Shown here one piece after another: positions 2,075 to 25,200 of a stretch of 64,000 nucleotides of DNA. Every line of letters starts with the position of its first letter. Position 1 is the first letter of the stretch. This DNA is from Thalia democratica (lineage: Eukaryota): the NCBI GenBank assembly GCA_965202585.1, contig OZ241827.1:72044001-72108000 (forward strand), read 5' to 3'. Position numbers and translations under genes: made by a program. The notes below the pieces were generated by a model that saw only the letters and a program-made list of their open reading frames with translations, did no database searches and was not told where the DNA came from.

Positions 2075-3159
2075 TGTAAGTTTGAAAAATTCTTTATGAA
2101 AAAAAAACTCATTTATGAAAAAACAAACAATTAAGATACTTTATTACCAATAAAAAACAATAATAACTATAAACACACATATATAATATGCAGATTAATT
2201 ATAGTAAAATTAGCTAAAGTTCAACTATTTTTGACATAGCTTACATATGAAGTTATTACTTTTACAAAAGTTAAGGTACTGTAAAAATCTATTTCGAATA
2301 ACTCCGGTCTGTTATGTACAAAACTCTGCCGTATCTGGTCCGCTGAATATAAGTTGCCTAAATTTAAAAAAAATTATATAAACTTATATATGAAAGAGAA
2401 AAATTATACAAATTTATAATACTAATTATGAAAAGTATTGGTTTGTCACTTACAGAAGAAAGCTCATTTTTATGAAAACTTATGAAGTTTTATTGAACAA
2501 AAAGTTCACCTTTGTTAATTAGTCAATCATTTTTGTACTGTATATGGCAACACCGAAACGGAAACAAATGTTTGTAAACCTCCATTAAAATTTTCCAAAA
2601 CACTGATACTGTGAATTTGTTTATTCTCGATAGTTTACTTGTGTTCTTTACGGAACGTCTTATTTCAAGTTAAATTTGTTTGTTTCTTTAAGTAAAAACT
2701 AGTATAAAACAATACAACAATTTTTGCTCGCTTTAAGTGAACGGATTCCGATTCGTTTTAGGGCAAAGTATGTCGAAGCTAGTTATCTGCAGAATCCAGA
2801 TCTTTTTTTTTAACTTAGGGTTTGGCTGGAACCCAATATTAATGAAATACACCAAAACCCCTTGGATCCGGATAATAAAAACTGATAGATCACTAGCCAC
2901 AAGTCTTTATGTTGTAATAAAGTCTTAATGTTAATATCTTTTATGTAGTTTTAAAACAAACCAAAACTTTTCCTTCATTTTAAATTACATCATATATGTT
3001 TTCATAACTAAACACTGTTGTTAAGTGTTTAATAATTTAATAAGATACCAATTTTTTATATCCAATAAGTCTACTGAAAGTCTACTAAGAGTAAGCTCGA
3101 CAAGCTTAAAGTCTTTCAGCGATTGTGTTTTCATCAATGTTGTCTTTATTTATTCACAG

Positions 3160-3709
3160 ACTTGACGGAGTGCTGAAAGGAAAGGTCGATGTGCGTTACT
3201 ACACTCCGGGGCCTCGGATCAAAATGTACGACAGCTTCAAAATGCTCCTCTACTGCGAAAGACAAGTGGACTGGCGCCACTTCAACTTCAACAGCGGGAG
3301 GGTGGAAGCAGATTACTCTAGCGCCACCTACAGGGACTTCGGTGGCGACTCCGAGTGGCAGGAGGACGAGCTGGACGAGAGAAGGGAGAAAATAAACAGG
3401 CAGGCCGACAGCAGGTTGCGAAAGTTCACGAGGTTGGAAAGCGAAGGTCACAACTTGCGAACGGCGGAGTCCTCCTCCGTTTTCGAGCTGCTGTACTTCC
3501 AGCCCGATTTCGAGGGCAAGCTCCCCGGTTGCCCGGACTGGCCCGAAGATGACGTCATAGAGGAAAGCGTTTTGGAAGACAGTAACGAGGAAGATGATGC
3601 GTTTTTGGCAATAATAGCGAGCAGGAAACGACCCAACACTTCAGCTTCGGATCCTATTCCTTGCAAAGTTCCAAGGCATCAACCGAAAAACAAGCCGAAC
3701 AGGGGCACT
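3160..3709 (+). CDS. Exon encoding MBD-like domain 1 plus conserved extension and basic linker
   Basis: Acceptor tattcacag|, donor |gtaagc. Translation (R)LDGVLKGKVDVRYYTPGPRIKMYDSFKMLLYCERQVDWRHFNFNSGRV aligns with MBD2 [48 protein letters not shown]. The exon is visibly GC/CpG-rich against the AT-rich flanks. Confidence 0.8.
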
Positions 3710-6700
3710 GTAAGCAAGAATGTTAGTATTTATTTCTTTTTCTAATGTTTGTAGTATTCTAACTTAATTATAAGTTTAGATTATAAGTATAATTTTAATT
3801 TAATGAATTTGTTTAGAGCAAGTGTTTCATTTTCTTTTGCTAACTGATTATAACTACAGATAAAAAAGACGCCTAAAGAAAACCCAAGCTTTGTCTCCAG
3901 AGTACAAAATCTTGAAGGGTGGACTCGTCATATAACGTACAGGTTGGTAGTTTCAAAGTCTATAATATTTATATGTTTTATACGTCAAGTTTTTTAGTTA
4001 TAAAACTGTGTCAGGTCACTAGTAAAGTTTAATAAATAACGTAAATTTATTAAACTTGAAGTACAAAAAAGCTAAAAAATAGCCCTTAAATAGCTGTCTA
4101 ATGAAACAATAACCAAAACACTTTAGTTGCAAAGCTTTCGTCCTTTATTTAGAACATTTTCAATGCAAAAATACGGCTTATTCAAATAGAATATCATATG
4201 TTTAAACACTTTATTAACAACCAAAAATCTGTAACGATAAGAAGTATGAATACAAACACAAATATATGATATTAACAGTGTACACCAATATATAGTTAAC
4301 TGATCTATAGTTCAATTTTGCTACATTTCTGATTTTTTAATGTAGTTTAAGTTTAGTTTTATCTGAGCTTTAAAAAAAAAAATTCACAAATAAAAAAAAT
4401 TTAGATTAATTTACTTTTTAATTGTATTTTTATCAGTTACTGCTTCTTCAGAGTTTACTATACTATTAAAATTTATCATTCTGTCAAAAAACCTAAAAGG
4501 AATACTTAAATATTACAATTATGTAAAATATCCTTTGACTTAATTAACATTATAGAGGCAATTTAACAAACAAGGCTTTAAAGTTTAATGACAATGTTAT
4601 AAACAAATAAACACATTTCTATCAAAAGAGCTTAGAATTTTACAGTCAATTTTTATCAGGAACACTTGCGTATTTTACCTACGTAGTTGCTCAAGCTAAC
4701 GCTGGAAACTCAACAAATAGTTTTGATAAGGGTTAGCTGAATACAGTTTACCTGTTTGCTTAATAACAATTTTTTTGAATAGGTCATGTCTCTAATTTCG
4801 TTTTATATCTGTAGTATTAAAAAATTATATAAGTAGTTTCAGTGCGAAACGGTAAAAACAATTTTAACATTATACCAACAGGGTCAATGGCGAGAGCAAA
4901 GGAGCAACCGACGTGTATTACTACACCCCCTACCCAGAACTGAAGAGGTATGACTCCTTGAAGGAGATGATCTACTGCGAGCGGGGCGTCGAGTGGGAAA
5001 ACTTCGACTACAAGTCCGGAACGTTCACGCAAGATCGCGTCCACAGGACCTTTGAAAAGTTCGGTGGCGATGAAAATTGGCAAGATCCGGAAAAAGAAGC
5101 GAGAAAGAAGGTGATTGCGTTGCAAGCGAGGAAGCGGATCGAGAAGTTTGAGAAGAAGAGTCGAAAAGAAGGGTTCGTGTTCGACGAGAACAAAGCTACC
5201 GTTTGCGAGCTGTTGTGGCACACTCGGGGAAGATTTGAAGGAAAGCTTCCGGGAAGGCCAGACTTGCCTGGAGAAGGTTCGTCAGAAGCTTCTAGCCAAA
5301 GTGTTAGCGATGGCGATGAGGAGCTAAAAGAAGAGCTGATGTTAGATGAAAGTGATACAGAAACATCGGATAGCGAATGTGTTGCTCCTGAAAAAGAAGC
5401 AGAAGTTGTAGATGAAGTTAGTTTAAAAGGTTCGTTAGAAGCTTCTAGCGAAAGTTCTAGCGATGGCGATGAGGAGCTAAAAGAAGAGCTGATGTTAGAT
5501 GAAAGTGATACAGAAACATCGGATAGCGAATGTGTTGCTCCGGAGAAAGAAGCAGAAGTTGTAGATGAAATTAGTTTAAAAGGTTTCTTAGAAGCTTCTA
5601 GCAAAAGTGTTAGCGATGGCGATGAGGAGCTAAAAGAAGAGCTGATGTTAGATGAAAGTGATACAGAAACATCGGATAGCGAATGTGTTGCTCCTGAAAA
5701 AGAAGCAGAAGTTGTAGATGAAGTTAGTTTAAAAGGTTCGTTAGAAGCTTCTAGCGAAAGTTCTAGCGATGGCGATGAGGAGCTAAAAGAAGAGCTGATG
5801 TTAGATGAAAGTGATACAGAAACATCGGATAGCGAATGTGTTGCTCCGGAGAAAGAAGCAGAAGTTGTAGATGAAATTAGTTTAAAAGGTTTGTTAGAAG
5901 CTTCTAGCAAAAGTGTTAGCGATGGCGACGAGGAGCTAAAAGAAGAGCTGATGTTAGATGAAAGTGATACAGAAACATCGGATAGCGAATGTGTTGCTCC
6001 TGAAAAAGAAGCAGAAGTTGTAGATGAAATTAGTTTAAAAGGTTTGTTAGAAGCTTCTAGCGACTAACTTACAACTAATTTAAACAACTAATTTAAAATG
6101 TTATTGATTATTTCTTTAAAAAAATTAAACTTAACTTTTAACTATCTATAACCAATCAAAGACCTTTTCAAAGTGCTAATTGCATTCGAGAAGTTTTGAA
6201 ATCCTTTTTAAACCCTTTTTTTCTTCATCAAAAAAAACAATATTTAAAACAACTATCTATACAGAGCCTAATAACATGAACGAAACGGTCAAAACAAACA
6301 TGGATCATTCCGATTCTGATTCAGAACGTGAAGATTCCTTTGAACAAATGTCCTATTCAGATAACTTTTCATCTGAAGATGAAGAACTACAGATAGTCAG
6401 ACCACAGAGTAAACTTTTAGGTCAGTTTTATTTAAAAGTATATTGTAACCTTTATTGAAATGTCTATGTGTCAAATGAATTTTAAATGAGCTTTTATTAC
6501 TACACGTTTCTGTTTGATTTCAGAAGAATCAATTGAAAGTTTAATGTAGCCTGTGTAAACTTGTAAAGATTTTAACTGTTACAGTATATAAGATGAAATA
6601 AGTGTGCATGATAACAAACAATGCGCACATAGATTAAATTTTATTTTGTTTGACTGTTGTTTTATTTTATATTAGACTTATTTGAAAATTACTGATGTTT

Positions 6701-9700
6701 CATTTAAAAATTTGAACTTAACTTTTAATATTTTTAACCAATCCAAAACCTTTTCAAAGTGCTAAATACAGTCGAAACTGTTTGAATATTGTTTGAAAAT
6801 ACTTTTTTTTTCTTTATCAAAAATAAAACATTATCTATAACAACTATTCATATAGTGCCAAATCACATGAACGAAACGGTCAAAACAAACATGGATCAGT
6901 CCGATTCTGACTCAGAACCTGAAGATTCATTTGAACAAATGTCCGACTCAGATAACTATTCGTCTGAAGATGAAGAACAACAGATAGTCAAACCAGAGAC
7001 GAAAAATTTGAGTGAGTTTTCTTAGAAAATATTTCAACGATCTTCGTTTTATAATTTAAGCATTAAATAAATTTTGAATTAGCTTTTATTACTTTACGTT
7101 TCTGTCTGGTATCAGAAAATTTAATTTATAATTATACGTAGGCTGTGGAAACTTATCTAGCTTTTAGCTCTTACAATAAATAAGGGAAAAATAAATGTGT
7201 ACAAATTACAATGCGCACAGAGATTAAATGTTAACTTATTTGACAGTTGTTAAGTTTGTATACGTCTTATTTAACTTTTTAAAGGTTTTTTAATTAGAAT
7301 TAAAATTTAGCTTTTAATTATGTTAAACCAATCAAAGAACATTTCAAAGTGCCAAATGCAGTGTTAGTACGTAGTATATTTGAATATTGTTTAGAAACAC
7401 TATTTTTATCTATAGAAAAAACACTATTTAAAAAACATTATACCCTACAGTGCCGGAACAAGTCGAGGATGAAAGCGCGGCTGCAGTCCAGTTCACAACA
7501 GTGTTCGCGGAAAGGTACTGCAAAACCAACCCTGGTCCTAACTTTCTCGCAAAACCTTTCGCAGACGCCATTGAAGCAGCTTTCGGAGGGTCTCCTTTCG
7601 AACCAGGAAGGAGGAAAGGACTAGGTAAACTAATGTCAATATGTATATCACAACTATATTAACTCAATTCTTGTTTCAACTTTGAATCATCTCAGTAAAA
7701 ATATTCTGATTCAGTATATTTTTATTTACTAATCTGAGTTGAAATTAATTAAAAATTACATAATTTTTTATTTTTTTAAAGTTCAGTTAATGTTCACTAA
7801 AATATACCATAAAAAACCAGAATCTCCTTTAGTTACAATGCATTGGTACTTATATTAATCTGATAATATTTACTATATATATATAAATCTTACTTATTAC
7901 ATTCTTTAACACAGCACTCTACCTGCACCAAGAAGACAACATCGACTCTCATGTATTTTGCGAGCAGAAGCTGTGCCACCCCGCCCTAACCCGTCACCTC
8001 AACAAAAATTTTGTGTGCACAGCATTCGATATGACCACCCCACACAATAGAGAAAAGTTTGCTTTTAAATTATATTATATTCATTGCTTTTTATCGCTTA
8101 TTTTCAAAATATCGTTTGCTTTATTTCAGTTTTATTTGTTAAGCTGTTGAACATAACCGTGCGCCTGTCATTAATCACGAGTTTTTTGTTTCCGAATACT
8201 CGATTAAGATCTCGTTATTCAATTTCGATTTCATCTGAACAGGTTTCTAGCCATATGCAAACCTAAAGATTACCAAATTCACAAGGCAGTATTGGCAGTC
8301 ATAGAAAAAGAAGAATATCCTGTGCTACTTTTAATGAGCGGGGGAACAGGAACAACGAATCCTATAGGAAAAATTGAAAGTAATTATTTTACAGATTTTG
8401 TTTTTATTTATATCATAACAAACTAAAAACAACACCTCTTCAACATTAAAACAACAAAAAAGTGATTTTGTCATCATTAACTTGATAAAACATTAAAATC
8501 TTAAAATGACTTTTTGTTTTTCAGTATAAAGTCTCATAATTGAAACAAACTGTATAACTTTGGAATTTAACAATTTTTTTTTTAACTTGCTTGTTTGAAC
8601 TTAAACAACCATTTATAGTATGTGACTTAAAGCAAAGGGTCAGGCAACATTTAAAACTAGGGTTTCCCAAACTCGTTTTCATATACGCCAACTCGTCTAA
8701 AATAAAATAAAAACCTTTGATCACGAATTGACTGTTTTCGGCCGCTGATAGCCTGAACATCCCATATATGGTGTGATATCGCCCACTTTAAGAGACCATA
8801 ACAAAAAATTCTAAATTCTCCTTGTCCGATTCATTTTAATTTGTTGTGCAGGTGACAATACAAATGAAGAAATTGAAAATACTGTTGCAATGACAAAACT
8901 GTTTTTGGAGGAAGACCTCAAGCAAGAAAAAGAGTTTGAGGTTAGTTTTAAATAACTTATACGTAGAGCAGTGTTAGAAAATTTCGTTTACATGTGTTTA
9001 TCAATATTAGTATTAATCTTTGATTGTTTGAAAATTTAAGTCCTGCTATTTCCGATAAAATAAAAAATCTTGTAGTTTTAAAGTTATCTGTTTGAAGTTT
9101 TTTTTTTTAACAAGAATTTCATGTCTTTAAGGTCAAGAATGTTAAAACATTGATTTTTACTCAAAATGTTTTCAAACAAGACATTAAGAAATTGACTGCT
9201 CACACTTGAGATGTCAAACATCAGTAATAGCTTGCACCAGTTGAAACTAAAAATCTATCAATAATAATTTAACGAATTAACAAACAAAGTCCAAAAGATA
9301 TAACAACCAAACTATCAATAATTTTTGCAGGGGCCGAGAATGGTGAGACGCCAACAAGACAAAGAATACAACGAGTCGCTGGCAATCGATCAAGCGAAGG
9401 TCAGTTTAACTAGATTAGATAAAAATAAGAGCTATGTTTCGCTCTATTGCTGTGTTAGTTACTTTAACTTTCCGTAAGTTAAACAGTTTACTAAACTTAT
9501 GTGATTAACAAATAACCGAATCAACGCAATCTACAGATAAGTTTGTAGTATTTGAAACTTCTTTATAGGTTTGTAGTAAAAAGAACAAAAAAAAATCTAT
9601 AGCCACAGTTGAGTACTATTAAAATGTGTTATGCTCTCAAATACTAACCATTTTTGCAAAAAAATTAATAAAATTTGTGTTTTTTTACTGAAACATAGGC

Positions 9701-10886
9701 CAGGAAAAAGCAGGAGGAGAAAGAGAGAAAGGAAGCCGAGGAGAAGGAGAGGCAATTGAGGGAGCAACAAGAGAAAGAAGCGGAAGAGTTCAGGGAATCT
9801 GAAGTTTCCAGACTCAAGTCCTCCCTACCCGATGAACCTCCTCATGCAAATAACGTTGGTTTCGTTTCGAATAGAAATTGTTATAATTGCATGTTTCTAT
9901 CGTGATTTTACAAAGTTTTGTTTAACATAATTATAAAATCATGTAGTTATTTTGTAATTGCTATTAAATTTCAATTTTTCTTGTTAAATTGAATTACTAT
10001 TGTTGCTCCCTTGTAGTTGAAATAAAATAATAATTTTTTTTGATAAACGTTAAACTTTGGGTAAAGTTATACTTTACTCTGTAGTATATAAAATTGTTAC
10101 ATTTTCAAGTATTAAAAGCTATATTAAAACATTACAAAAATTTTGTTTTATTTCAAACAACTAACAACTAGTTAGTATCAGCTACTTTACAAGCATCTAA
10201 CATGTTTTCAGGTTTGCACGATAAGGTTCAAGCTTCCAACCGGGTCGGGAGGTTTCTTCACCAGGAGGTTCCTTCATGAAACCGACACGCTGCAGTCAGT
10301 TTACCATTTTGTCGGATCTCAGGGATACATTCAACAGGAGTACGACGTTTTCAGAGCTCATCCCAAGGAAAACGTGAGTTTAATTTTTATTTTCTAAGTT
10401 GTAATGAGTACAGTTATACTTTTGTACATTTCTCTAAATTTTTATTATTGAAATTTAGGAAGGTTATACTCTTCATAAGTTTATAAGTAAGCAAATTAGA
10501 ATATAAAAAAAATTCTATTTATTTATAGTCCGAAATCAAAAGTTACAAATACTAAAATTTTTAATGGACAATCCTTACAAATAATTTTACTCTATTAGAA
10601 GTGAAAGCTTTAAAATAAAAACAGCAGACTTCAATCTAATATGAACTTTTAATTTTTAAAGCACAACCTTATTTTCTGTAAAGTTTTATACTCAATTTTT
10701 TTTTGTTTTAACTTTCGCAACAAGATTTAAACGAATCGATAAACTTCAATTCAATACAAACATTTCGCTTTTAATTTACAAATTTTTTTTTTTTTTTTCT
10801 AGCTTTCGCAACGAGATTGCAACGAGACGATCAAAGAGAGCGGCATCGGAAAGAGGGAACAGGTCATCGTTGAAAAGAAGCAGTAG
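3160..10886 (+). CDS. Predicted multi-exon gene, 5'-incomplete: 2x MBD-like + acidic repeats + FAF1-type UAS-coiled coil-UBX
   Basis: Hand-built exons with AG/GT boundaries and matching phases: 3160-3709, 3860-3942, 4882-6041 (or ending at 5276), 6265-6420, 6856-7011, 7451-7624, 7915-8056, 8243-8379, 8852-8940, 9331-9399, 9699-9854, 10212-10373, 10803-10886 (TAG). No in-frame stops across the joins. The link between the MBD half and the UBX half rests on the phase-1 donor at 6042 or 5277 and is not transcript-proven. Confidence 0.7.
3860..5276 (+). CDS. Two exons (3860-3942, 4882-) encoding MBD-like domain 2 plus conserved extension
   Basis: Spliced translation LEGWTRHITYR|VNGESKGATDVYYYTPYPELKRYDSLKEMIYCERGVEWENFDYKSGTF. 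It is collinear with MeCP2 [22 protein letters not shown] (GWTR, R, G, S, G, DVY identical without gaps). A phase-2 intron splits the Arg codon. Confidence 0.85.
5285..6061 (+). repeat. In-frame 153-bp (51-aa) acidic tandem repeat, 5 full units plus a stub
   Basis: gaagcttctagc recurs at 5285, 5438, 5591, 5744, 5897 and 6050. Unit EASS[QEK]S[VS]SDGDEELKEELMLDESDTETSDSECVAPEKEAEVVDE[VI]SLKG[SFL]L; ORF open throughout. Confidence 0.95.
6120..7450 (+). repeat. ~590-bp intron+exon tandem duplication (two 156-nt exons plus a third homologous intron end)
   Basis: Exons 6265-6420 and 6856-7011 both encode PNxMNETVKTNMDxSDSDSExEDSFEQMSxSDNxSSEDEExQIVxP. Upstream intron text (aaccaatcaaa...ttttcaaagtgctaa) recurs at ~6150, ~6737 and ~7327. 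Confidence 0.9.
7451..10886 (+). CDS. FAF1: FAF1-like UAS domain, coiled coil and UBX domain (8 exons; p97/VCP adaptor module)
   Basis: VQFTTVFAERY...ALYLHQEDNIDSHVFCEQKLC...AFDMTTPHNREKFLAIC (UAS), then VRRQQDKEYNESLAIDQAK and an E/K/R coil. The UBX part reads SLPDEPPHANNVCTIRFKLPTGSGGFFTRRFLHETDTLQSVYHFVGSQGY...HPKENL...ESGIGKREQVIVEKKQ*. Closer to FAF1 than FAF2 by eye; probably a divergent paralogue, so the symbol means FAF1-like only. Confidence 0.9.
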
Positions 10887-11121
10887 TGATGACGTAGCTG
10901 TTACGTCACGCGTCATACTGTGACGTCATAACAACTTGGTTTTTAGCAAAACCCAAGTTTAACGTAGATATTTTTTATTTGCATCCTGGTATTTCAAAGC
11001 GAATATTTTTTGTTGCGTTTCTGATGCATTTAACTTTTAGGAAATGGTTTTTTAAATAATAAATTGTTTATAGTTAAGTTGTTTTTTTAATTTCATTATT
11101 TATGTTGTTTTAAGTGAAGCA

Positions 11122-11205
11122 TGTCCTGGATAAGACGTAAAAAGGTAACCGTGGTATGCGACTCGATAACAAAAAGATTCTTCGTTCACCAGGTCCTAGG
11201 ACCAA
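11122..11205 (+). repeat. Dispersed ~85-bp SINE-like structured repeat, copy 1 (more decayed)
   Basis: tgtcctggataagacgtaaaaaggtaaccgtggtatgcgactcgataacaaaaagattcttcgttcaccaggtcctagga aligns end to end with 17582-17665. Confidence 0.75.
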
Positions 11206-11476
11206 ATATATTAAGCATCTTCTTGTTGTTGTTCAATAAACAATCAAAGGTCTTAAGTTTAATATCAGCTGCATCAGTTTACATTTTAATTAACTCAGGT
11301 GTGGCCAATCTTTCTTTGCCGACCTTTAAGTAATTGATAAAATTTAAGTAATACAACAGTACAATAAAGCTTTATCTTGAATTTTTTTTTTCATTTTTAA
11401 TTACAAACGGTCGCTTCAGTACCCTGTACTTAAGTCCACTTGGTTAAGACCATAACAGCAGTTTCTCGCGACTATT

Positions 11477-11517
11477 CCAGCCTGATGAGTCCTAATTAAG
11501 ACGAAACCGGTCGTAGG
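11477..11517 (+). ncRNA. Minimal type I hammerhead ribozyme (Penelope/retrozyme-type)
   Basis: CCAGC-CUGAUGA-GUC(CUAAUUAA)GAC-GAA-AC(CG)GU-C-GUAGG. Intact core, 3-bp stem II, palindromic stem III (ACCGGU), GUC cleavage triplet, stem I with one A.A mismatch. Confidence 0.8.
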
Positions 11518-13531
11518 ATTATCTCGGATGCTGTTGTTGATCTTGCGGTGAAGTTCATTGTTTATTATCGATGGCATAAAACATCTCAACTTTGTTGATG
11601 ATGGCCGAAATAAACACTGGCTGAAACAAAATAAAAAATAAAAAATGCATAATCTTTTTACACTTAGTTGCAAATGGTTATAAATAGTTGTATGTAAGTT
11701 TTGCACTAAACAACTTTTTTCAAGTTAACTGCAATTAATCAGTTTTATTATAACAAGAATAGCTTATAACTGCTTTTGATTTTTAGGGTTGATAAATTAT
11801 ACTTAGGTAATAATTTAGTAATAGTGTAAACTGTTTTACTATAAAATAAGTATGAACTGTTTTTTAAGTAATAGTTTTGAACTTATCAAACGAGATTATT
11901 TGTTTTTTCCTATCACAGTTTACTAGGTTGTACTTTAGTTTATATCAGAAACTAAAGACATTGTCATTATTTATAACTATGTTAAATACTAAAATAAATT
12001 TACTTTTTGACCAATTTTAGTTGATGACAATTAAAAATACTAAATGATTGTTTAAAGAAAAGCTTAAAAATTAACGAATTGGTAAAATTTCTTATTCATT
12101 AAAAGCTAAGACAAACAAGATAAAAATATTGCTTTGAACAAACACAGAAATTTTACATTTAAACAGAACCACATATTTGTTTTAGATTTAGATTAGTTGT
12201 AACCAGACTTGATATAAGGCAATTTAATAATCCTGAATTTAAACGCCCGTCAGTAGGACTTAAAATTAGCTAAAATAATAATTTAAACTCTAATACCTGT
12301 ATTTTTTCAACGCTTTTCACGCTGCCTTTTATCTTATTTCTGCTCTGAAACTTTTCAAAAATAATGCAATAAATACAATTACAAAAGTAATTTACAAAAA
12401 GTCCAATTCACGTTACTAAACAAGAAAATAGCAACAATACTTCACTGATTGATACATCAGCTAGCAATTTATCCTTAAAAGCATTACAACAAACGACAAA
12501 ACTCAGCAAAACTAATATTTAATTATGTTCTTTTAAAATAAACACTATTTTCAGTAAAGTTTATTTTTTTAAGATGAAGTGGTGTTTTACATTAATTACG
12601 TGATAATATATTTATAAGATGTTTAGCTTATAAAATTTTTAAAAGTAAGGTTGTCAGAACTTTAGACATAATGAGCTCTAAATATTGAATAACATTTGTT
12701 TAAACTTTTAATTTCATGCTTGAATATATAAGAGGCATATTTCTAACAGAAAATGGGAAAATAAGCTTCAAAGTATTACTGCTTAAAACTCCTAAATCAA
12801 AATTTTTTTCTCTATTAGTTTATGTTTGTAGCATTTAATGCCTTATTTTATTGGAAGTGTTGTAAGAGTAAGTATCAAGATATTAAAGAATGCTTTAGTG
12901 TTCTGGTTTCCCAGTAAGTAAAGTAGGTGAAACTAGCTAGAATTAAAGTAATTATTTGAGTTTTTCTGTAGTTTTGTTTTTGAACCCTAAATTTTAAAAA
13001 AGTGTTAGTTGGTTAAACAGTTAGAATAGTATAAATAAACAAACAACAAACAAAGTAGTTTTATTCTACTTTTAGTAGTACTTTAATGTTAGCTGTAACA
13101 AAGTTTGGAATAAAAAATACTTTGAGTTTATAATAAAATTTGGAACTAATGAGAACCATTTTTATAAGAATTTTTCTACTTGTTTGCATACAGTTTTAAA
13201 CAGAAAGTGGTACTATAAGTAAGTAAATGAAGATTATGAGCTATTTTGAACTACAACCACACTTTTACAATAAACAAGTTTAATGCTTGTTATTAAAATT
13301 AAATTACAGAATAAATAAAAGTGAAATAAACTTTGAGTAGAGTTCTAGAACTTAACTTATTTGTTATTTGTTTGTTTGTTGTAAAGTTTTTTTATTACTG
13401 TATTTTACTTACATTGTACATTGTACAATCAAATTCAGAACTAACTAATGGAAAAAAAAGTCTGTTATAATGTTTAAAGTACATCCCTGTTAGTTTTATT
13501 TCTTGTGTAAAAATCTTGACAACATCTAAAG

Positions 13532-14853
13532 CAGGGGTTCCCAACCAGGGGTGCTCGCACCCCTTGGGGGTGCGAGGCAGCATTCCAGGGGTTGCGAGAT
13601 AGCTTTTTTTTTTGTATGATACATAAGGAGATTTTCACTCTCTGATAAAGTTTAAAAAGTTAAAAAGTTCATTTTGTTATAAAAATAAGTTGGTGCTAAT
13701 TTTCTGAATAAATCAATTTTATTAATACGTCATAGAGCAAGAGCGCTTTTCTAGAAGTAAATTCATTTTACTAGAATTATTTGATAGCTGTTAGTTTAGA
13801 ATTAACATTTCAATAAGGCTTTCTTAGAGTTTTAAACCTGTGAATTTTAATCATCTGTTCTTTAAATGTTTTATTTTCTTAACTGAACATTAATTGTTTA
13901 AAACAGTTTATGAGCTAGCATCTATTTTAATTAAAATACTTGGATAAAAATTAGTATCTTCAGCAGGCTTTTTATTAGCTGTTAAGAACAGGTTCTGTTA
14001 AGTCTATTACATTTATAATGTAATCTTTTATTAAGCTTAGTTGTGCAGAAAGTGGTGCTTAAAGATTTAACATCAGTGAATTGTAAAGTTCACAGCAATT
14101 CCTGTATGTTATAACATTTAAGAAAACTTGTTTTTAGCTTCAATGAAACCAATTTTTATAGATCAGCAAAAGTATTCAATGCATCAACTTTATTTCTATT
14201 CATTCCTTTTTAGAACTTAAACTGTTTACCTTTTTCAATCTACATTTTTCTATTTATGTTGTAAGCATACAAACTTTTCTTGTATTTGCTTTTATACATA
14301 TCTTTGTACAATTTAAGACTAAATATATTTTAACTTTTAAAAATCTTAACTCAAATCTTTATTATTTTGAAACCTCTTAGCTGCTAATAGTTTTGAAAAT
14401 AAAACATTACATAAGCTTAACTTAGAATAGCTGATTTTTATTTTTTAAGTACATATATATATTCATAACAAAATGTATAAAAAATTTAGTTTTAAGTTTA
14501 AGCCTAATATTTATTACTTTTCTAGTGCTTTTTCCTCACTTCTAATATTTTTTTAAATCTTAGAAATCGTTTATCATAGCAGAAGGAAGAGTGAGTTCTG
14601 ATGTTTTCTACCTTATAAAAAATAGATAAAACTTGTTCGTATATAGTTTGTTATGTTTTTAAATTTCCAAGTATCTTATTTTTGTTAATATAGTACACTA
14701 TCATAAAAATTAAAATACAAATTATTAATTAATGAAATCAATGATTTTATAATCGAATTATTAATAAATAATTATAGCATATGGTGTTAGGGGTGCGAGA
14801 TCAAATTAAGAGACTTTAGGGGTGCGGGGCATCAAAAAGGTTGGGAACCACTG
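13532..14853. mobile_element. Non-autonomous hAT (Charlie-like) DNA transposon
   Basis: TIRs CAGGGGTTCCCAACC / GGTTGGGAACCACTG (14/15). Perfect 8-bp TSD ATCTAAAG at 13524-13531 and 14854-14861. Subterminal GGGGTGCG motifs. Confidence 0.92.
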
Positions 14854-15256
14854 ATCTAAAGTCTTATCTAAAGTATGATGTTCTTTTTTTTTCGTGTTTG
14901 ATTTGTTCTTTATATAATTATAACCACTAAAAGTCATGCTTAGTTTTTATAAGTAGTATAAAATGGGTACCTTCAAGTATCATTTACTTTTAAGTTAAGT
15001 TTAAATTTAATTATGATTGTTAGAGTGCTAGTACCATTATGACCTTACAAAATGATATTTTTATGATAATGTTTGTATTAATTACAACTTCAAAATGAAA
15101 CTTTACGGCCAATCATAATCAACAAATTTAAAATCACTTATAATTAATTATAAAACTGCATTGTCATGATGCAATTAAAAGAAAAAACAAATTCATTATT
15201 TTAATAAACTGGCTTGGAGTCACTTCAGTGTTGTCAGTTCTTAAGGTGTGTACTTC

Positions 15257-15415
15257 GGCTTGGAGTAGTGAAACCAGTTCACTTACAGCTAACTTAAATT
15301 TGTTGCTTATTAGAACATAAATTCTGTATTTGGGCTTGGAGTAGTGAAATCAGTTCACTTACAGCTAGTTTGATTTTAATTTGTTGCTTGTTTGAACAAC
15401 AAATTCTGTATTTGG
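15257..15415. repeat. 76-bp tandem duplication
   Basis: ggcttggagtagtgaaa[ct]cagttcacttacagct...aaattctgtatttgg present at 15257 and 15333. Confidence 0.8.
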
Positions 15416-15638
15416 ATTTTAAAAGTTAAATTGAAACTCAGCAGTTAGTTTTTCAGTTCAAAATAAAATAACACTTTTAACTGCTGATTAATACAATTTA
15501 ATAAGGGCTGATACTAATTTAAACTATTAACTGCTAGGTTGTTATATCGACTAACTTTTATTGAGAAATAGTTCCTATTAAATCTAAATAAGTATTATTT
15601 TTCTAAGTAGTCAGTTTTATTTCAAGAAAACTACAATA

Positions 15639-16408
15639 CAGTAACCTCTCGCTTATTTACGCACATTGTGTCCACAGAAAAAGTGCGTAAAGATATGAAA
15701 GATCGTAAAGAAACGAGAGGTACCAAGTATACTCACTATAATGGCTGTTTTTTAATATTACCTCTAATTAAAAGCAGACTGGGCACTTTCCCACTTTTAA
15801 CTATTTGTTTACTTAATTTATAATCATGAAAACAACAGATAAAACTATACATATATTAAAAAAAGGATTTGAATTTCTATAAATAATAATACGACTAGAA
15901 ATAGTTTTACTACTTAATAATAATTAGAAATTATCGTTATCTTTATTTATATGTGACATTTATATTCTTTTCTACTTAGCAAATTCAATTTATAATTAAT
16001 CTTTACAATTATAAAATGGTGTTTATTAATATATAGGGCAAGACTGCTGTATTATTTCTTTGTGTTTTAAACTCTCATTATTTTATCATACTTTTATTAT
16101 TAAACACAGTCATGTTTATTTCAGAATTTTGATTTAATTTCTTATTGTTAACAAAATTTCTGATATACTGAGGTATAACTAAATGTTTATCAATTAGTCA
16201 AGGAACATAAATTTACAAAGTCTAAAGATATAGAGAGGTGTATTAGCATTCAAAAACATATTTTAATTCAAAAATATACATTAAACCTAGTTTGTGCAAT
16301 ATTTAAAAAAAAGAAAGTTTTTATTTTCTGAATTTTATAGAATTCTGAAATGCGTAACTAACAAGAGTGCGTAACGTCACGAGTGCGTAAAGATCCGAGA
16401 GGTTACTG
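15639..16408. mobile_element. Tc1/mariner-pogo (Tigger-like) MITE
   Basis: Perfect 13-bp TIRs CAGTAACCTCTCG / CGAGAGGTTACTG, TA on both sides, repeated subterminal gtgcgtaa motifs. Confidence 0.9.
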
Positions 16409-16955
16409 TAGTTTAAAAATTTTCTCATATTGTGTTTAGTTTACATACGTTTAGAAACTTTTACGATGTTAATTTATCAAAAAAGCAAAAATTAAAAGTA
16501 ATAACTTAAAATCTTAAGTTATGGTTACTTTTAAGTTAACTATTAGTTAAGTTACTAATTCTAATTAAGTAAAAAATTATCAAAGAAGACAATACGTTTT
16601 ACTATTAAAACTTCGAAACAAATCAATATAGTTCTTACAAGTGTAGATTTTTAAAATAAATAACAACTAGAGAATCTTCTAAAATTTAAATTATAAACAA
16701 AGTTGGAAACATTAAGCACGTACAAAGGCCTATTAAAAGTCTCAATTTTTTTAACAGGTTTGAACTGCAAGAATTTAGATCTAATAATTGAAAAACTTTT
16801 CTCAGCCAAGTTTTTATAAAATGCGTCCAGTGGTCCTTTAAAATTGCGACTGCTGGACTTATTTGAGGATGAACTCCGGAAAGAAACTCAAAACTTGGCA
16901 AACATTCAGAGAAACAAGACTTAATATCAGGGATGAATTACCAATGCATTACAAT

Positions 16956-17165
16956 GGTATACTATCAAAATCCACCCGCGTTCAACATCCACCCGATTTT
17001 TTTAAAATTTCTTTACTTATTAATTTATATATTTTTTGCATTATTTTAATTTATTTTTCACTATCGCTGTTACTCCTAACCCTCGATCAGTAAGCGGTTC
17101 TCGAATTTGACTGATTCGATTTTGAACGGGTGGATTTTGATCGCTGGTGGATTTTGAACGTGTCC
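16956..17165. mobile_element. 210-bp Mutator-type (MULE) MITE
   Basis: Imperfect ~40-bp TIRs (GG...aaaatccacc repeats / ggtggatttt...CC). Perfect 9-bp TSD CATTACAAT at 16947-16955 and 17166-17174. Confidence 0.85.
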
Positions 17166-17581
17166 CATTACAATATTGTAAACAATATGTAAATATCTTT
17201 TAATAGTAAAATAAGTTATGTGAAAATAATTTAATTTTTCTCAGTTTAATTTTAATAAACTAATGTTTATTCATCTTCAAAAAAATTATCTTTGTAAATG
17301 GAAGTTAGGCACTATTTTTTTTTATAAATCATCAACTAACAACACTTTGAATTGTTCTATGAAAAATCAAACAGTTCTATGCAATACATCTGCATCTTTG
17401 CAATAACAAGTAGTAGGTTTAAGACTAGTTATAAGTGCAATTTCTAGAGTAAGGTAATGTTGACGACTGATAGAACTAGTATATCAAAATTATTAGAAAA
17501 AAATAAGTTTTAAATGTTCAAAGAAGTAGAGTAATGTTCCTAATGTTTAACATGATAGTCCATTTAACATAATTTTTAACT

Positions 17582-17665
17582 TGTCCCGGACAAGACGTTA
17601 AAAGTTACCTGTGGTGTGCGACCCGATAACCGAAAGGTTCTTCGTGCAACAGGTCCTAGGACAAA
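17582..17665 (+). repeat. Dispersed ~85-bp SINE-like structured repeat, copy 2
   Basis: Homologous to 11122-11205. Folds as ACCUGU/ACAGGU, UGUGCGA/UCGUGCA and AACC-GAAA-GGUU nested stems. Confidence 0.75.
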
Positions 17666-17693
17666 GTATTTTAAGGGGTAGGTGTCAGAAAAG

Positions 17694-18150
17694 CACAGCG
17701 TCACTTTAGCACGGGGTGACACTTTAGCACGGTGTGACACTTTAGAACGGGGTGACACTTTAGCACGGTGTGACACTTAAGCACGGGGTGACACTTTAGC
17801 ACGGTGTGACACTTTAGCACGGTGTGACACTTTAGCACGGTGTGACACTTTAGCACGGCGTCACTTTAGCACGGAGTGGCACTTTAGCACGGAGTGACAC
17901 TTTAGCACGGCGTCACTTTAGCACGGAGTGTCACTTTAGCACGGGATGACACTTTAGCACGGCGTCACTTTAGCACGGAGTGTCACTTTAGCACGGGATG
18001 ACACTTTAGCACGGCGTCTCTTTAGCACGCGGTGACACTTTAGCACGGCGTCACTTTAGCACGGAGTGTCACTTTAGCACGGTTGACACTTTAGCACGGA
18101 GTGTCACTTTAGCACGGTTTCACTTTAGCACGGGGTGATACTTTAACACG
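17694..18150 (+). repeat. 16/18-bp minisatellite (core ACTTTAGCAC), left TIR array, roughly 25 units
   Basis: Units actttagcacggtgtgac / actttagcacggcgtc / actttagcacggagtgtc read directly. Confidence 0.95.
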
Positions 18151-18797
18151 GAGTGTAACTTTATCACTGATTGATTCTTTTGCACAAAATGATTCTTAAG
18201 CACGTAGTGACACTTAAGCGCCATCGATAGTTTTAAGTAACTTAATCAAATACGTGTAAAGTTTGTATTTAATAAAACGTTTAAAAATTAATTTATATAA
18301 CCAGCATGCTGTTAATTATGCAATTTAGGCACTTTGAAGTGTGATTTCAAGAAAGAGTGTGTCTTCCAAAATTATTTTTAATAAAAATATTATTTAAGTA
18401 AGATGTAAATTGTAAGACAAAGTTTGGCAGTCTTTTCGAGCTATATTTAGAACAATCATTTGTAGGTAGCAAAACGTTAGAAAACATCTTTAGTGGCCTG
18501 TATTTTTTAAGAAAAACTATACTTAATAACAAAAATAAGTACTGAAAAACAAGAAGTTAGTAAATCAAATGGTAACTAGTTTTAAAAATCCTTAATTATA
18601 TAAATGTACTTATACTGTATTCTTTTTTACTTCTGTTAATAATATAGTAATACTTTACTTACATTTTATTTAATTACTTTGCTCAGCTGACATGTTTAAA
18701 ATAACTTTATTTATGTAAAATAATAATAAAAAATTTATGCATAGCACTAAATTTTATTATAAAAACGAACACAAACGAAATTTACAAATATATACAT

Positions 18798-19148
18798 TTA
18801 ATCTATATCAAAATTGTATTGAATACCGCGTAGGTATTCAAGTATATTAGTATTTTCATTAAAACTTGACACCAGATAAAACAGACGCTCATCTGCTTGT
18901 CTGAACCTTATTCTTTTGGGATCTGGTTTTATCCCTGCCAGAAGGTGTTCTAGTCCCATATCCCGAGAAATCTGAGTCGTTTTCAGAATATTTATAAAAC
19001 TCCACAGATTTGGATGGTTTCCATTTAATACTGCGTACAAAGCTCGATGCGCTGCTTCAGCAATATTGTTCGTTCGATCACTTTTTGTAAGTACTTGTTC
19101 GTACTGACTCCACAAAGGAATTGGAAACAATGGCTCACCTCTAGCACC
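18798..19148 (-). pseudogene. MULE transposase C-terminal exon remnant
   Basis: ARGEPLFPIPLWSQY...RTNNIAEAAHRAL...HPNLWSFINILK...DERL...LEYLRGIQYN matches the FPxxLW...RTNNxxExxH...HPNIW...YLRGI pattern of animal MULE transposases. Confidence 0.85.
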
Positions 19149-20694
19149 TTTAAGTTTAATTTTTTTTAACCTTACTTTAACCTTTAACCTTACTAAGCTG
19201 ACTTTTAAACTTGGTTATCTTTTAACTTGGTTTACTTTAAAAGTACAAAAACTCATAATCTAAATAAAATAAAAACTCTATATCTAAAGGATATTGACTG
19301 GTATAAGCTAAAACTTTTAATTATATGAAAATACAAAATAATAAACACTTTATCAAAATACAAGCTCTACGTCTAAAAGATATTGACTGGTATAAGTTAA
19401 AGCCTATACTAAAATAAAATTTTGTTTTGTAAAAACAATAAAAATCATGCACTTTTTGGAAATAAAGCTGTTAGTCCAAAAGGTATTGATACTAATTTAA
19501 ACAAATTGAAATCCGTACTAAAATGAACTTTACTTACATTGCAGCTCTTTTCAATGACTTTTCTTTTGGTAATGAGCCTTTGATTGATAGTGGAATTCCA
19601 TTTATTGCCGAACTTACAAGTCCTTTTGGACTTGCACTAGGAACTAGTACTAAAGTTTAAAATAACATTTACGTAACAAACAAAACATACATTTTTAAAC
19701 CTATACTAGCTTGTTCAAAACATAAACAAACAAAACATAAACTCTTTTACACTTTCTTTAAACACAAGAACTTGTATTGTTACTTTTACTTTCACAGCTT
19801 AAACGTATAAGTAAACTATGTGTTTAAATAAAAGAAACATTTATTTTGAACTAATCACTAATACTTATAATAATGTTAATGTTGAACTGCTAACTTCATG
19901 AACTAAGTGTTAAAATTAATCCTATAATAAACAAGCCTTATACTTTCTATTATGTTCAAAACATTTTGAATTTTTTAACTATATAGACTAAAAACGAAAA
20001 AAGCTAAATCAAATATAAGGATATGAGAAACACAATGTCTAAATCTATAGTATTATTAACAAAATGGTTTACAACTAATTATAACTTATTTAATAAAAAA
20101 ATTGCAGAATACTAACATGCTTTAGTTTTTAATTTGTTCTTTAACACTTGAGGCGGTGGAACTCATTCAAACTATAAAATAAACACACCAAGGATGAACT
20201 TTTAAAACATTATGCTAAAACTTAAATGTTTTTAAACTTTGTGTGTGCTCAAAATAATATAAATAAAAACATTTTTAAACTTAAAATTTAAAAAAACTGA
20301 CACTTACCAAAATATGTTAATGCTATAAATAATGCATTAAATTTCGTTGAAATCTTAGATTAATCTAAAGTTTATTTAGTTTTAATAACTCTTTACGTCT
20401 GTGATGTAACTTAAGCAAGAAAATAAATTGTACAAAAGAACTAAAATTGAAACATTTAACATAATAATTTAAGTGGTTTCTTATTTTATTTTTCAAGTCC
20501 ACAGTCAGACTTGTCAAAGTTTCTTTATTATATTTTACCTTTAAATGACTTTTAAATAGTTATTAGTGTAGAAAGTAGAATGATCAAATTAAGTTTGTTT
20601 ACTTATATTTATGTTGTTAAATTTTTTAGACCTTACATTTAAATTATGTTCAAATTTTTTTTTGATAAAAAGCTTAAAATAAATAAATACTGCA

Positions 20695-21005
20695 ACGGCT
20701 TTGCGTCGATTAGCGGGGAAAATTACTTTTCTTTTTATTGGGTTCATTTTATTGTACTGTTTTGGCAGTAACTTGTTGCCGTTGTTATGAGCTCATTTTG
20801 GCTGTGCTTTTGCACAGTTAAGCCATTATTATCTTGCTCAGTTGTTTAAGAATTTAGTTTAAACGAAAATTTTGTGTTCTGTTTCTTTGATTCGGTATTT
20901 CGATTAGTTGGCATTCATGTTCTTTGGTTTTTTATCATCTTTATGTTTCGCAGTTTATTAATTGTAAATACACCATTTCCTTGACTCGATTTTATTACAA
21001 CTAGT
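20695..21005 (-). pseudogene. Frameshifted MULE N-terminal region (FLYWCH-adjacent) remnant
   Basis: Minus translation GNGVFTINKLRNIKMIKTKEHECQL...FRLN*ILKQ...LPKQYNK...KRKVIFPANRRK fits the xxHxH...FRxxLK...LP...KR order upstream of the DDE domain. Confidence 0.45.
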
Positions 21006-21799
21006 CTAAATTTAAATAGTTAACTGTTTTTTAAATCCTTTTTAATAAACAATAGTTCGTTTAGCACCTATAAAATATTAAGTTAATAGTAAAAGTTTAA
21101 TTCGGATTTACTACATCGACTTTATTAACATGTCAACTTAATTTAAAAGTAACTTAAGAAACTATCTACGACCTATCTTATAATAACGTGTTAAGTCAGT
21201 TAAACGCTAAACCCGCATGTATAAAAGTAACAATATCGGCAGATGGTAAAATGCAAACATGAGTACAAACACTTTTGAAACAATCGGCTTAAAATAATCA
21301 AATAAAAATTTTACTGATCAAACTACAAATTGTACTATTTCTTAAAATTTAAAACAATAGAAAACCTAAATAGACAGAGAAAGTTGTAAAATAGTTTTAT
21401 TTACTCTTGTTGCAGTCTATATATAAATTTTACACATTTATACTTTTATTTAACGTATTTACTAATATACTAGTATTTATTAGTTGCTAGATACTTTTGT
21501 TGCTAGGTTTAAACAAGTAGTTTTACGTTTAAAATAGTAAAATAGATAGTAAATATTTAAATACGTTAGTTAAAATATCTTAATAAAATGATTTGATAGA
21601 ATTCTTAAAATTATTTTTGTATTGTTATTATTAAGTTGAGGTTTGCCATAGAGTAACTAGTGTAATTCTATATTAAATACAAAGTTTTAGTTGAAGCTTT
21701 AACTTGAAAGATATTAAAAGCTTGTAGTATTATGTTGCATAGTTTATTTTTATATTTTTCAACATAACATATAAGCATAAACAAATGTGTCATTCCATG

Positions 21800-22216
21800 C
21801 TAAAATGATGCCGTGCGAAAGTGTTACTCCGTGCTAAAGTGACGCCGTGCTAAAGTGTCATCCCGTGCTAAAGTGTCACCCCGTGCTTAAGTGACGCCGT
21901 GCTAAAGTGTCACCCCGTGCTAAAGTGACGCCGTGCTAAAGTGTCACCCCGTGCTAAAGTGTCACACCGTGCTAAAGTGTCACCGTGCTAAAGTGTCACC
22001 CCGTGCTAAAGTGACACTCCGTGCTTAAGTGACGCCGTGCTAAAGTGTCACCCCGTGCTGAAGTGCCACACCGTGCTAAAGTGTCACACCGTGCTAAAGT
22101 GTCACACCGTGCTAAAGTGTCACACCGTGCTAAAGTGTCACCCCGTGCTAAAGTGTCACACCGTGCTAAAGTGTCACACCGTGCTAAAGTGTCACACCGT
22201 GCTAAAGTGTCACCCG
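21800..22216 (-). repeat. 16/18-bp minisatellite (GTGCTAAAGT), right TIR array, inverse of 17694-18150
   Basis: ccgtgctaaagtgtcaca units read directly; reverse complement of the left array. Confidence 0.95.
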
Positions 22217-22239
22217 TGCTTTTCTGACCCGTTCCCAAA

Positions 22240-25200
22240 ATCACCACAGACGGTTAAACAAAAAAGTTTATTGTTTGTCCAGAAAAACTGGAGCAAAAAG
22301 AGATGTACGACTCCTGCAATAAAACCAATAAGTTTTTGAAGCGCCTAAAACTAAATCTAGATGGGTCAATTAAAAAACTACGTTAGAAAAAATCTTTGCT
22401 CGAATTCCAATGACCACTGTGAGAACCCAAACACTTTTAAACGAACTCTACTCTGTGTTTAACGAGATGTCATTGCAGCTTTATATCCAGATGTGCTACA
22501 AAGCCATGACAGCAGAATGTAAGTTGAAAAAGTTAAAGTAAGAAAAACATAATTTCATTAAAATAACTCTGTTAAATATGCAATTGTGTTGTTTTTAAAG
22601 GTGTAAGCTCCGCTATGAAAAAGCTACAAAAGTCAACCAGATGTGAAGTACACATTTTTAGTAACCATAACATGCACTCCTCCAAAAATATACCTGATTG
22701 TTTGTTTACAATTAGTCATAATGACTTAAAAAATAGCATAAACCTTCAGGTTTTTTGAGGAAAATAAAGTTTCAAACGAAGAATTTACATGTATTCTGTC
22801 AGCAGAATGTTGACCAGCACAAGCTATGAATACATTAAGCTTATATACTACCATCTAGCAGTTTTATCCACCAATAAATGATTGTTTTTTTTATAATTTA
22901 AACTTAGATATAACACAAGAAATTGAGGAATTTATAAGAACATTAATAGCAGATTGGTAGTTTAATATTATTAAAGTTAAAATTGTTTCTTAAAAATAGA
23001 AAACTAATAAATTTTTAAATATGACTAATTTGTTGAAGATACCTTGGTAAAGAATCAGGTCACACAACTCCTGGATCGTGAAAAATTTGGCAATGAGCGG
23101 AACCACAAGTCTCCTTTTGTTAAGGACTTTAAAGTAAGAGCTTAAATAAACAACACTTTTCTGTTTACAAGTATGAATTTTTTTTTAGAAAACTTCTGAA
23201 GAGGTCATTACCAATCAAGGAGAAATAATCAAGCAAGGGACCAAGGTTAAGTTTCATTGCGAAAAATTCACAAGATACTTGGGCATCATATTTGTGTCTG
23301 GGGCAGCCTTTGTTCTTAATATTGTAAAGATATAGTTTATGTATATCAATCAAGCACGTTTATTAACTTTATAAAATGTACTTGAAACTAAGAAAAAAGA
23401 GTCCTAGTGTAGTGCTCTTAAGCTCAGAAACATAGAAAAGAAGCAAAGCAGAAGATGGCAAAGAACTGGATGATTATGATGGCAATAGTCGCTGGTCATA
23501 TCATATTTACCTCAAAAAGCTTCGAGAGATCTACATGTAGTTTAAATATACTTATTTTTTTAGTATTTTTTGTATAACTGTTTTATTACAACTATTTATT
23601 TTTAACCACCCGCAATCAAACATCCTTCATAATCAACCATGCCCTGGATTTCACAAAGATAGAGAAAGTAACACTCAAGATGGGGAAGATAGACGACAGT
23701 TGGGGAACTACAAAAAAAACTGGCAACAACAAATTTAATTAACTTTATCCTTCCACAGAAGATGTCTATACAAGAAAGTACAAACCTGCACACATTGAAA
23801 AAAATGTAAGCAATATTTGGCCTTATAGGAATATTTAATTATTTTTTAAGGTAGATAAACTTATGCAGCTTTCCCAAAAAAATTGATGGTTGCAATAGTT
23901 AAGAAGAATGATTAAATCTTCAAGATTTTTCATCAAAACACTTGTTCCTGGTGACAGGATAGCTAATATAATGTTTGATTATATCTTTATGAACACAATT
24001 CTGGTGCATTTTAATGGAGCACCGGTAATTCTCGCAGATGCTATAGTATTGAAGCCCAAAAAAAAGTTAAGATATTAAATACGTAGAAATATAGCATTAG
24101 TTTCACCAACATTTCAAATCTAAACACACAGTATCAAACATTAGAAGTTTATTTAAAGCTTGGACCCATCTAGCAACGACTGCAGTAGGTAGAAGGATTA
24201 TTCTACATGTAGTATTAAGTTATGTAACTAGTAATAATACTCACATACATTTCAATATCATTCAAGGAAGTGAACGTGGAGAGATAGAAGAGAAACAAAT
24301 TGTAAATGCAAAATAACAAATGAATAAGAAAGAAGACTCGTGGGAGAAAAAACTGTTGTAATCTTGATAACAGCTTTAAAAAAGCCAATGTAAGAATAAC
24401 CAAGTAATTTGCTTTGTGTATAGTTTTGTATCAACAGGTTGTACGTGGATGGATACAAAGCTACGACCGGTAGAACTTCATGATGATCATCTACAGCTAG
24501 CGGCAGATATTGAAAAGATCAAAAAGTATGCGTTTGTTTCTTTACATGTGGACACAACTAACATTATTTTGAATTAGTTAAATAAAAAGGAAGTGTACCA
24601 TCATTGCACTTTCTGAGGTTTTTTCAACCTAGTGTTTCTTTAGTTTGAGTATGGTTTAAGAACTTTATTTAAATTATAAATAAAACATGCATTCATTAGT
24701 GGACAAAACTGCTAGATGGTAATATATAAGCTTGATGTTTTTGATAGTAATGAATAATCTTAGGAAAAGATGAACGGTCAAAGAAGTTGGCACCAAAAAA
24801 ATCATACAATCACCCACCTCTTATACTGGCTGACATGTGGTCTTTGTGCACAACTAGAGGAGATTATAGGCACTTCTTAGCAAAGATCAACAATGACGTT
24901 CTGGACTTATCAAGTGGTTTTTGGCTGTAAAACATATTATCGAAATACTAAAACAGACAATGCTGTTACTAGGCATGTTGAAATTGACTTCTCGTTTGCA
25001 CTATTAATTAGAATCTGCTCAACGAGATGTCATTACAGTTTTATATCTTGAGATGTGATACGAAGCCGTGACAGCAGAATGTAAGTTGAAAAATTTAAAA
25101 AAAAGAAGAATTTTGTTAAATATGCAATTGTGTTAATTTTAGAGTTGTAAGCTCCGCTACAAAAGTCAACCAGATGTGAACTACACATTTGTAATAACCA

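Follow-up and report, generated by a model that had tools for sequence, protein, structure and literature searches.

In animals, cytosine methylation is read chiefly by MBD proteins, whose architecture is poorly known outside vertebrates and insects. An enlarged version is found in the TAM domain of BAZ2A and BAZ2B, in which an MBD-like core is extended by C-terminal helices into one larger domain. Most animal genomes hold one to ten MBD family members, Copia elements have captured MBDs, and an MBD-Fbox family has been described (PMC6673714). We analysed a window of 64,000 nucleotides from the genome of Thalia democratica (assembly GCA_965202585.1, contig OZ241827.1, positions 72,044,001 to 72,108,000 of the forward strand), in which an earlier note, made from the letters alone, had pointed to an unrecognised module of about 80 residues standing behind each of two MBDs. 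The window is AT-rich (G+C 27.7%) and sits in C2, a chromosome-scale contig of the 802-Mb assembly; positions given below count from its first letter. As judged from the predicted exons, both module copies lie in one multi-exon gene carrying two divergent MBD2/3-like domains. The module is new, having no described relative, and the proteins that carry it fall among the known MBD proteins with accessory domains. The reading which we favour, at about an even chance, is that the module is a lineage-restricted helical extension, which together with the divergent MBD2/3-type domain forms one conserved cassette of about 165 residues.

Conservation, predicted fold and distribution of the module

Translation of the open stretches 3110-3742 and 4868-6064 gave, on the forward strand and at 3305-3545 and 5030-5270, the motifs which the earlier note had read in both copies. 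Module copy 1 has 82 residues (3299-3545) and carries TYRDFGGDSEWQ, QADSRLRKF, VFELLY and FEGKLPGCPDWP (codons 3326-3544), and copy 2 has 83 residues (5021-5270) and carries TFEKFGGDENWQ, QARKRIEKF, VCELLW and FEGKLPGRPDLP (codons 5048-5269). The whole part shared by the two copies is 42% identical over 117 residues (BLASTP, E 3e-29), and the module taken alone is 38% identical over 79 residues (E 3e-15). By the method of Nei and Gojobori, the proportion of synonymous differences (pS) between the copies was 0.68 and hence saturated, at a proportion of nonsynonymous differences (pN) of 0.43, over the whole shared part; for the module only, the values were 0.65 and 0.47. This bears out the heavy synonymous divergence that had been claimed, and since the synonymous sites are saturated while a defined set of residues has been kept, the motifs are real and selected.

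A profile built from the two copies, as the earlier note had proposed, was searched against 1.84 billion protein representatives and returned 18 relatives, all from ENA metagenome assemblies or from one marine metatranscriptome, every contig traced being from Tara Oceans. A word-indexed protein search with a full-length paralogue exon as query gave one relative, and no relatives were found in JGI metagenomes or IMG/VR. In Pfam-A no family was common to several of the 24 module sequences searched; 16 families were matched weakly, each by one sequence, the best at E 0.009. Neither MBDa (PF16564) nor MBD_C (PF14048) was matched by Pfam after the MBD in any member, and hhalign against the genome's own MBD2/3 aligned query columns 13-72, ending a few residues beyond the MBD, which agrees with the earlier view that the module is unlike the C-terminal region of MBD2/3. 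Profile searches of PDB gave no credible match for the module, and a language-model atlas searched with it returned only unnamed clusters, with feature sharing at chance level. A match to thioredoxin chain 3gnj (E 0.003, 33 residues, over ELLYFxxGxFxGKxP) was judged to be due to chance, the stretch being helical in our model and a strand-turn-strand in thioredoxin.

The module comprises about 82 residues after the FxFxSG loop, and its conserved columns were scored over the same 24 sequences. They include an aromatic pair in T[FY]xx[FY]G and an invariant Trp followed by Asp, then a long helix with hydrophobic positions every three to four residues and a conserved Arg (83%) and Phe, further columns in FxFD and AxxVxELL[YW]F, and at the end Gly (91%), Phe, an invariant Gly, Lys, an aromatic residue or Leu, Pro (92%), Pro and Pro. 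Most of the conserved columns are aromatic or aliphatic (F, Y, W, L, V), together with Gly and Pro, and the module's net charge differs between members, from -11 to +12, with -10 in copy 1. Because the charge varies and the hydrophobic columns are kept, a structural core is a better account of the module than a basic arm that binds DNA.

Structure was predicted with AlphaFold2 on a model that leaves out the MBD N-half. With the two-sequence alignment the mean predicted local distance difference test score (pLDDT) was 49.7 and uninformative; with an alignment of 39 sequences, the stretch 4883-5285 reached a pLDDT of 81.5 and a predicted template modelling score (pTM) of 0.70, with block means of pLDDT 85-95 across most of the module. 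This model has four helices, at residues 26-32 (the MBD helix), 55-61, 69-94 and 107-113. Within the module there is a short helix around T[FY]xx[FY]GG, the invariant Trp and an amphipathic helix of about 26 residues, and then a short FxFD turn, the VxELL[YW]F helix and an extended, Gly/Pro-rich GxFxGKxPxxPxxP end. A three-chain prediction of the N-half exon, the C-half and the module, made without the alignments, stayed below pLDDT 40 and gives no verdict either way. In structure searches, no predicted or solved fold matched the model beyond its MBD part, and BAZ2 TAM and other DNA-binding extensions were likewise not matched. As the model is of the MBD C-half and the module together, we take the module to have no known fold only provisionally. 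What was found is neither a confident Pfam hit nor a disordered, low-confidence prediction devoid of homologues. Since no Pfam family and no sequence of solved structure fits the module and the AlphaFold2 model is confident, the earlier reading of a new domain or an extended MBD gains support, and the module is real, conserved and, as far as the model goes, probably folded.

A family profile found 32 places in the genome, of which about 19 have a full module, across five chromosome-scale contigs (C2, C4, C5, C6 and C7). The module-only profile found 19 places in the 802 Mb, and all of these are loci of an MBD half plus the module; a module without an MBD half occurred at none of them, nor among the metagenome matches in which the N-terminus is present. 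Eight or more subfamilies were resolved in a maximum-likelihood tree, and in six of them a genome copy stands with a Tara Oceans sequence, which places the origin of the module before that species split. The two window copies fall into different deep clades, and the internal duplication is therefore old; the subfamily of copy 1 contains two near-identical paralogues on C5 and the Tara Oceans sequence P0002. Across pairs, pS was 0.65-0.74 (saturated) and pN 0.34-0.47. The ratio of nonsynonymous to synonymous rates (dN/dS) was 0.20-0.47 in recent paralogue pairs and about 0.6 in two subfamilies, and below 1 in every pair measured, showing purifying selection. From these sequences the module appears restricted, so far, to one group of marine organisms, with at least two organisms carrying it.

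The codon usage of the cassette exons is a separate observation. Their G+C content at third codon positions (GC3) is very high, at 0.77 for window 3161-3545 and 0.66 for 4883-5270, and reaches 0.92-0.93 in two paralogues (among L010, L017 and L011), while L006 and L013, at 0.38, do not stand out from the neighbouring genes and the canonical MBD2/3, which lie at 0.26-0.38. The observed/expected ratio of CpG is about 1.0-1.35 in the cassette exons vs 0.48 in the canonical MBD2/3. The high GC3 could come from biased gene conversion in a multi-copy family, or from an unmethylated state.

The MBD-like domain and the exons that carry it

The open reading frames (ORFs) of the window gave no match to the Pfam MBD family (PF01429) at E values up to 10. 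The gathering cut-off of this family is 21 bits, and ORFs taken exon by exon hold half a domain, which lowers their scores; four relatives (P0009, P0025, L006 and L017) scored below threshold, at 14-17.7 bits, at the right profile positions, and the spliced natural protein P0011 had no Pfam MBD match. When the 39-sequence family profile was run against PDB, MBD2 and MBD3 made up nine of the ten top rows, matching over profile positions 3-51 only, with the best E at 1.6e-4 (MBD2). The spliced full MBD aligned by hhalign with the genome's own MBD2/3 at E 2.3e-5 over 55 columns, from PGW to FNFxS. The domain before each module is, by these comparisons, MBD-like and divergent. It resembles MBD2/MBD3 (PF01429; PDB 6cnp, 6c1a, 6cc8) from the PGW hairpin to the FxFxxG loop, and superposition of the half-domain model on MBD2 covers 41 residues at 2.6 A. 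The differences are that the family has a YPxL insert in place of the SG turn, that Asp replaces the second arginine finger in the window gene, and that the part after the MBD is unlike either the post-MBD region or the coiled coil of MBD2/3.

Exon A (3160-3709, forward strand) holds the C-half of the first MBD (3161-3298), module copy 1 and a charged tail (3546-3709); it is bordered by the acceptor cacag/A (phase 2) and by the donor GGCACT/gtaagc at 3709/3710. Exon A joins position 3860 in frame from this donor, which puts both copies in one gene. Exon B (3860-3942, forward strand) is the N-half of the second MBD and ends in NLEGWTRHITY plus a split Arg codon; it is entered in phase 0 and left in phase 2 (AG/gttggt), the Arg codon being completed by the first base of the exon at 4882. 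Exon C (4882-6067, forward strand) contains the C-half of the second MBD (4883-5020), module copy 2, an acidic repeat and the stop codon (6065-6067). Exons B and C, once joined, align collinearly with MBD2/3. An AG acceptor opens both stretches, and its phase and the residue at which it falls, (x)[LV][DN]G..KG..DV.YYTP, do not differ between the two; each MBD is split by a conserved phase-2 intron, whose position and phase recur in copy 2 and in other paralogues. The earlier placing of the module behind each MBD was right as to position, but only the C-half of the MBD shares an exon with the module, the N-half being a separate exon.

For the first MBD, a regular-expression search found no N-half exon inside the window. 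This exon, which ends in YPEGWTREISYR/gt, is located in L034 (about 8026-8105), some 1.9 kb upstream of the first base of the window, and is kept in two near-identical paralogous genes on contig C5. The predicted splicing is supported because the marine metatranscriptome protein P0011 reads continuously across the predicted junction (GWTRVISYRPPSDKVQTRSHD). No RNA run holds the locus; the three runs that do hold it consist of DNA-type contigs, which cover the introns and have no splice joints. In the intron between exons B and C, window 3939-4336 is a high-copy repeat, its summed contig word depth being 9,000-29,000 in all three DNA runs vs a few hundred elsewhere.

Contact residues were read from the alignment. 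The first arginine finger, whose codon is split by the intron, is invariant and the Asp of the DV motif is kept. The second finger is Arg (YRS) in most members and Asp (YDS) in both window copies and in the C5 paralogues, and the Tyr position of the set that contacts methylated CpG (mCpG) is variable; the full contact set does not occur in the window MBDs. Because Asp replaces the second arginine finger in both window MBDs, canonical symmetric mCpG reading by the window protein would be doubtful. The genome has a canonical MBD2/3 orthologue elsewhere (L033, C9:8200702-8203857, single exon, ORF 1456-2208), collinear with human MBD2 residues 152-387 at E 1e-14, the coiled coil at the C-terminal end included. 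As this separate canonical gene exists on C9, the module-bearing family is an additional, divergent set of MBD genes. In the alignment, the Asp, Tyr and second arginine finger of MBD2 correspond to Gln, Arg and Asn in L033 itself, whose first arginine is shifted by one residue, and L033 may be an MBD3-like non-reader.

In the same genome there are three tandem frames of 873-878 residues (C1:49968705-49997951, L042-L044), each with a one-piece, complete C5 DNA-methyltransferase (DNMT) domain at Pfam E 1e-48 to 1e-51, and further loci with DNMT domains. Such a one-piece tandem arrangement is unusual for animal DNMT genes.

Tails of the cassette and neighbouring features

The tails joined to the cassette differ between members, being acidic repeats in the window gene and, elsewhere, a USP-like domain or an unrelated conserved C-terminal domain. 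In the window gene, a coding tandem repeat directly after module 2 (5274-6063, forward strand; 153-bp unit, 5.2 units, 95% identity) encodes a Ser/Asp/Glu-rich acidic tail. The fusion to a UCH/USP domain is found in a cluster on C2 at 65.6-65.97 Mb and on one Tara Oceans contig; in this subfamily, represented by L013 (C2:65666290-65669709), L016 and P0008, the MBD half, the module and the UCH/USP domain share one exon (Pfam E 1e-18). By eye, L013 and P0008 have DEY in place of the catalytic-His motif GHY of USPs, and in P0008 the Cys-box position is Ser, so that the USP-like domain may be non-catalytic. Several members end in a C-terminal domain of about 85 residues (LWxxLxxSVGxNLSxxCF...DPxxDxRWxFLWKK...KRKxFFxxxIA), which is present in L010 (751-1050, reverse strand), L006 (2557-2856, forward strand), L017, L018, P0001, P0006, P0009 and P0037, and absent from the window gene. 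Its identity with the MBD2/3 coiled coil (MBD_C) was considered and rejected (hhalign E 0.5, no PDB match, no Pfam match).

Past the stop codon of the window gene, two similar open stretches on the forward strand, at 6180-6455 and 6786-7022, each start with MNETVKTNMD.SDSDSE.EDSFEQMS.SDN.SSEDEE and have the appearance of an acidic first exon duplicated in tandem. Further downstream, exons resembling UAS (7432-7659) and UBX (10176-10394) domains were recognised by eye.

Readings of the cassette and their meaning

That the module and the divergent MBD make up one evolutionary and structural unit, an enlarged MBD-type domain serving as a portable targeting cassette, is favoured by the strict co-occurrence of the two, the exon that the module usually shares with the MBD C-half, the hydrophobic conservation and a confident model of a single body. 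In this extended cassette, the conserved aromatic and aliphatic residues would pack on the small MBD core, and the packing would give the MBD a larger stable body and a surface for protein contacts; the cassette would then be the part that targets the protein, the opposite end differing between members (acidic repeats, a USP-like domain or the C-terminal domain), with a possible role in chromatin or DNA targeting. The same data can be read with the module as an independent protein-protein interaction domain, an adaptor that stands beside the MBD by chance and brings in a partner, with the Gly/Pro-rich end FEGKxPxxPDxP as its docking element. In one paralogue the MBD/module boundary does coincide with an intron, conservation is strongest in the ELLYFxxGxFEGKxPxxP end, where one Gly is invariant and one Pro nearly so, and one subfamily fuses the cassette to ubiquitin-system-like domains; the variable net charge suits an adaptor as well. 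However, an independent domain would hardly be expected never to stand apart from the MBD, be it at the 19 genomic places or among metagenome matches with the N-terminus present, to lie in the same exon as the MBD C-half in almost every copy, and to be modelled together with the MBD half as a single body at pTM 0.70. We consider the adaptor a lesser possibility, which still deserves to be kept in mind.

Two further explanations carry less weight. The long helix is rich in Lys and Arg in many members, has a conserved Arg and Lys-rich flanks, and adjoins a domain of DNA-binding type, and it could follow the DNA backbone and so extend the footprint of the MBD, as the TAM extension does, making the module an extra nucleic-acid-binding element. 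This is rather unlikely, since a net charge that swings between -11 and +12 leaves no conserved basic surface, the conserved positions are hydrophobic, and no structural match to BAZ2 TAM or another DNA-binding extension was obtained; a basic DNA-contacting helix is disfavoured because charge is not conserved. That the copies are decaying remains of a repeat or mobile element, or an annotation artefact, whose motifs have no present function, would be in line with a multi-copy, tandemly clustered family with stops in L009, L019 and L022, with a locus lacking coverage in RNA runs, and with codon GC3 unlike that of neighbouring genes. It is very improbable, because frames are long and intact in most copies, dN/dS is below 1 in every pair and subfamilies are shared with other marine organisms; moreover, one metatranscriptome relative is spliced as predicted, IMG/VR yielded no relative, and the copies have neither a transposase nor a reverse transcriptase attached to them.

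The module as a lineage-restricted extension of the MBD remains our preferred reading. In concept, the cassette of MBD plus module would be the same as TAM in BAZ2A and BAZ2B. The Copia-MBD and MBD-Fbox families (PMC6673714) likewise present the MBD as a portable cassette, multiplied well beyond one to ten genes; the present family is a further expansion of this sort, but its cassette has no retrotransposon domains, carries its own module, and bears tails that are acidic, USP-like or of the C-terminal-domain type.

A bolder possibility is that the cassette is what the lineage uses to read DNA methylation or CpG-rich DNA, coupled to new outputs that include a USP-like, possibly catalytically altered, domain of the ubiquitin system. 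The canonical MBD2/3 orthologue L033 departs from MBD2 at the Asp, the Tyr and the second arginine finger; in many members of the cassette family the Asp and the two arginine fingers are intact. We think this possibility improbable; if true, methyl-DNA reading would be linked directly to ubiquitin signalling, a coupling not known before.

The significance of the locus is that an undescribed domain always accompanies a divergent MBD, is kept by selection in at least eight subfamilies and in two or more marine organisms, and occurs in new combinations with different effector tails. If the module turned out to be merely a structural add-on specific to the lineage, a family entry would still be worthwhile, as it would end the orphan-ORF annotation of these genes. 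If it stabilises or retargets the MBD, it would be the second enlarged MBD-type fold after the TAM domain, and would open a way into the chromatin biology of a group for which functional data are very scarce.
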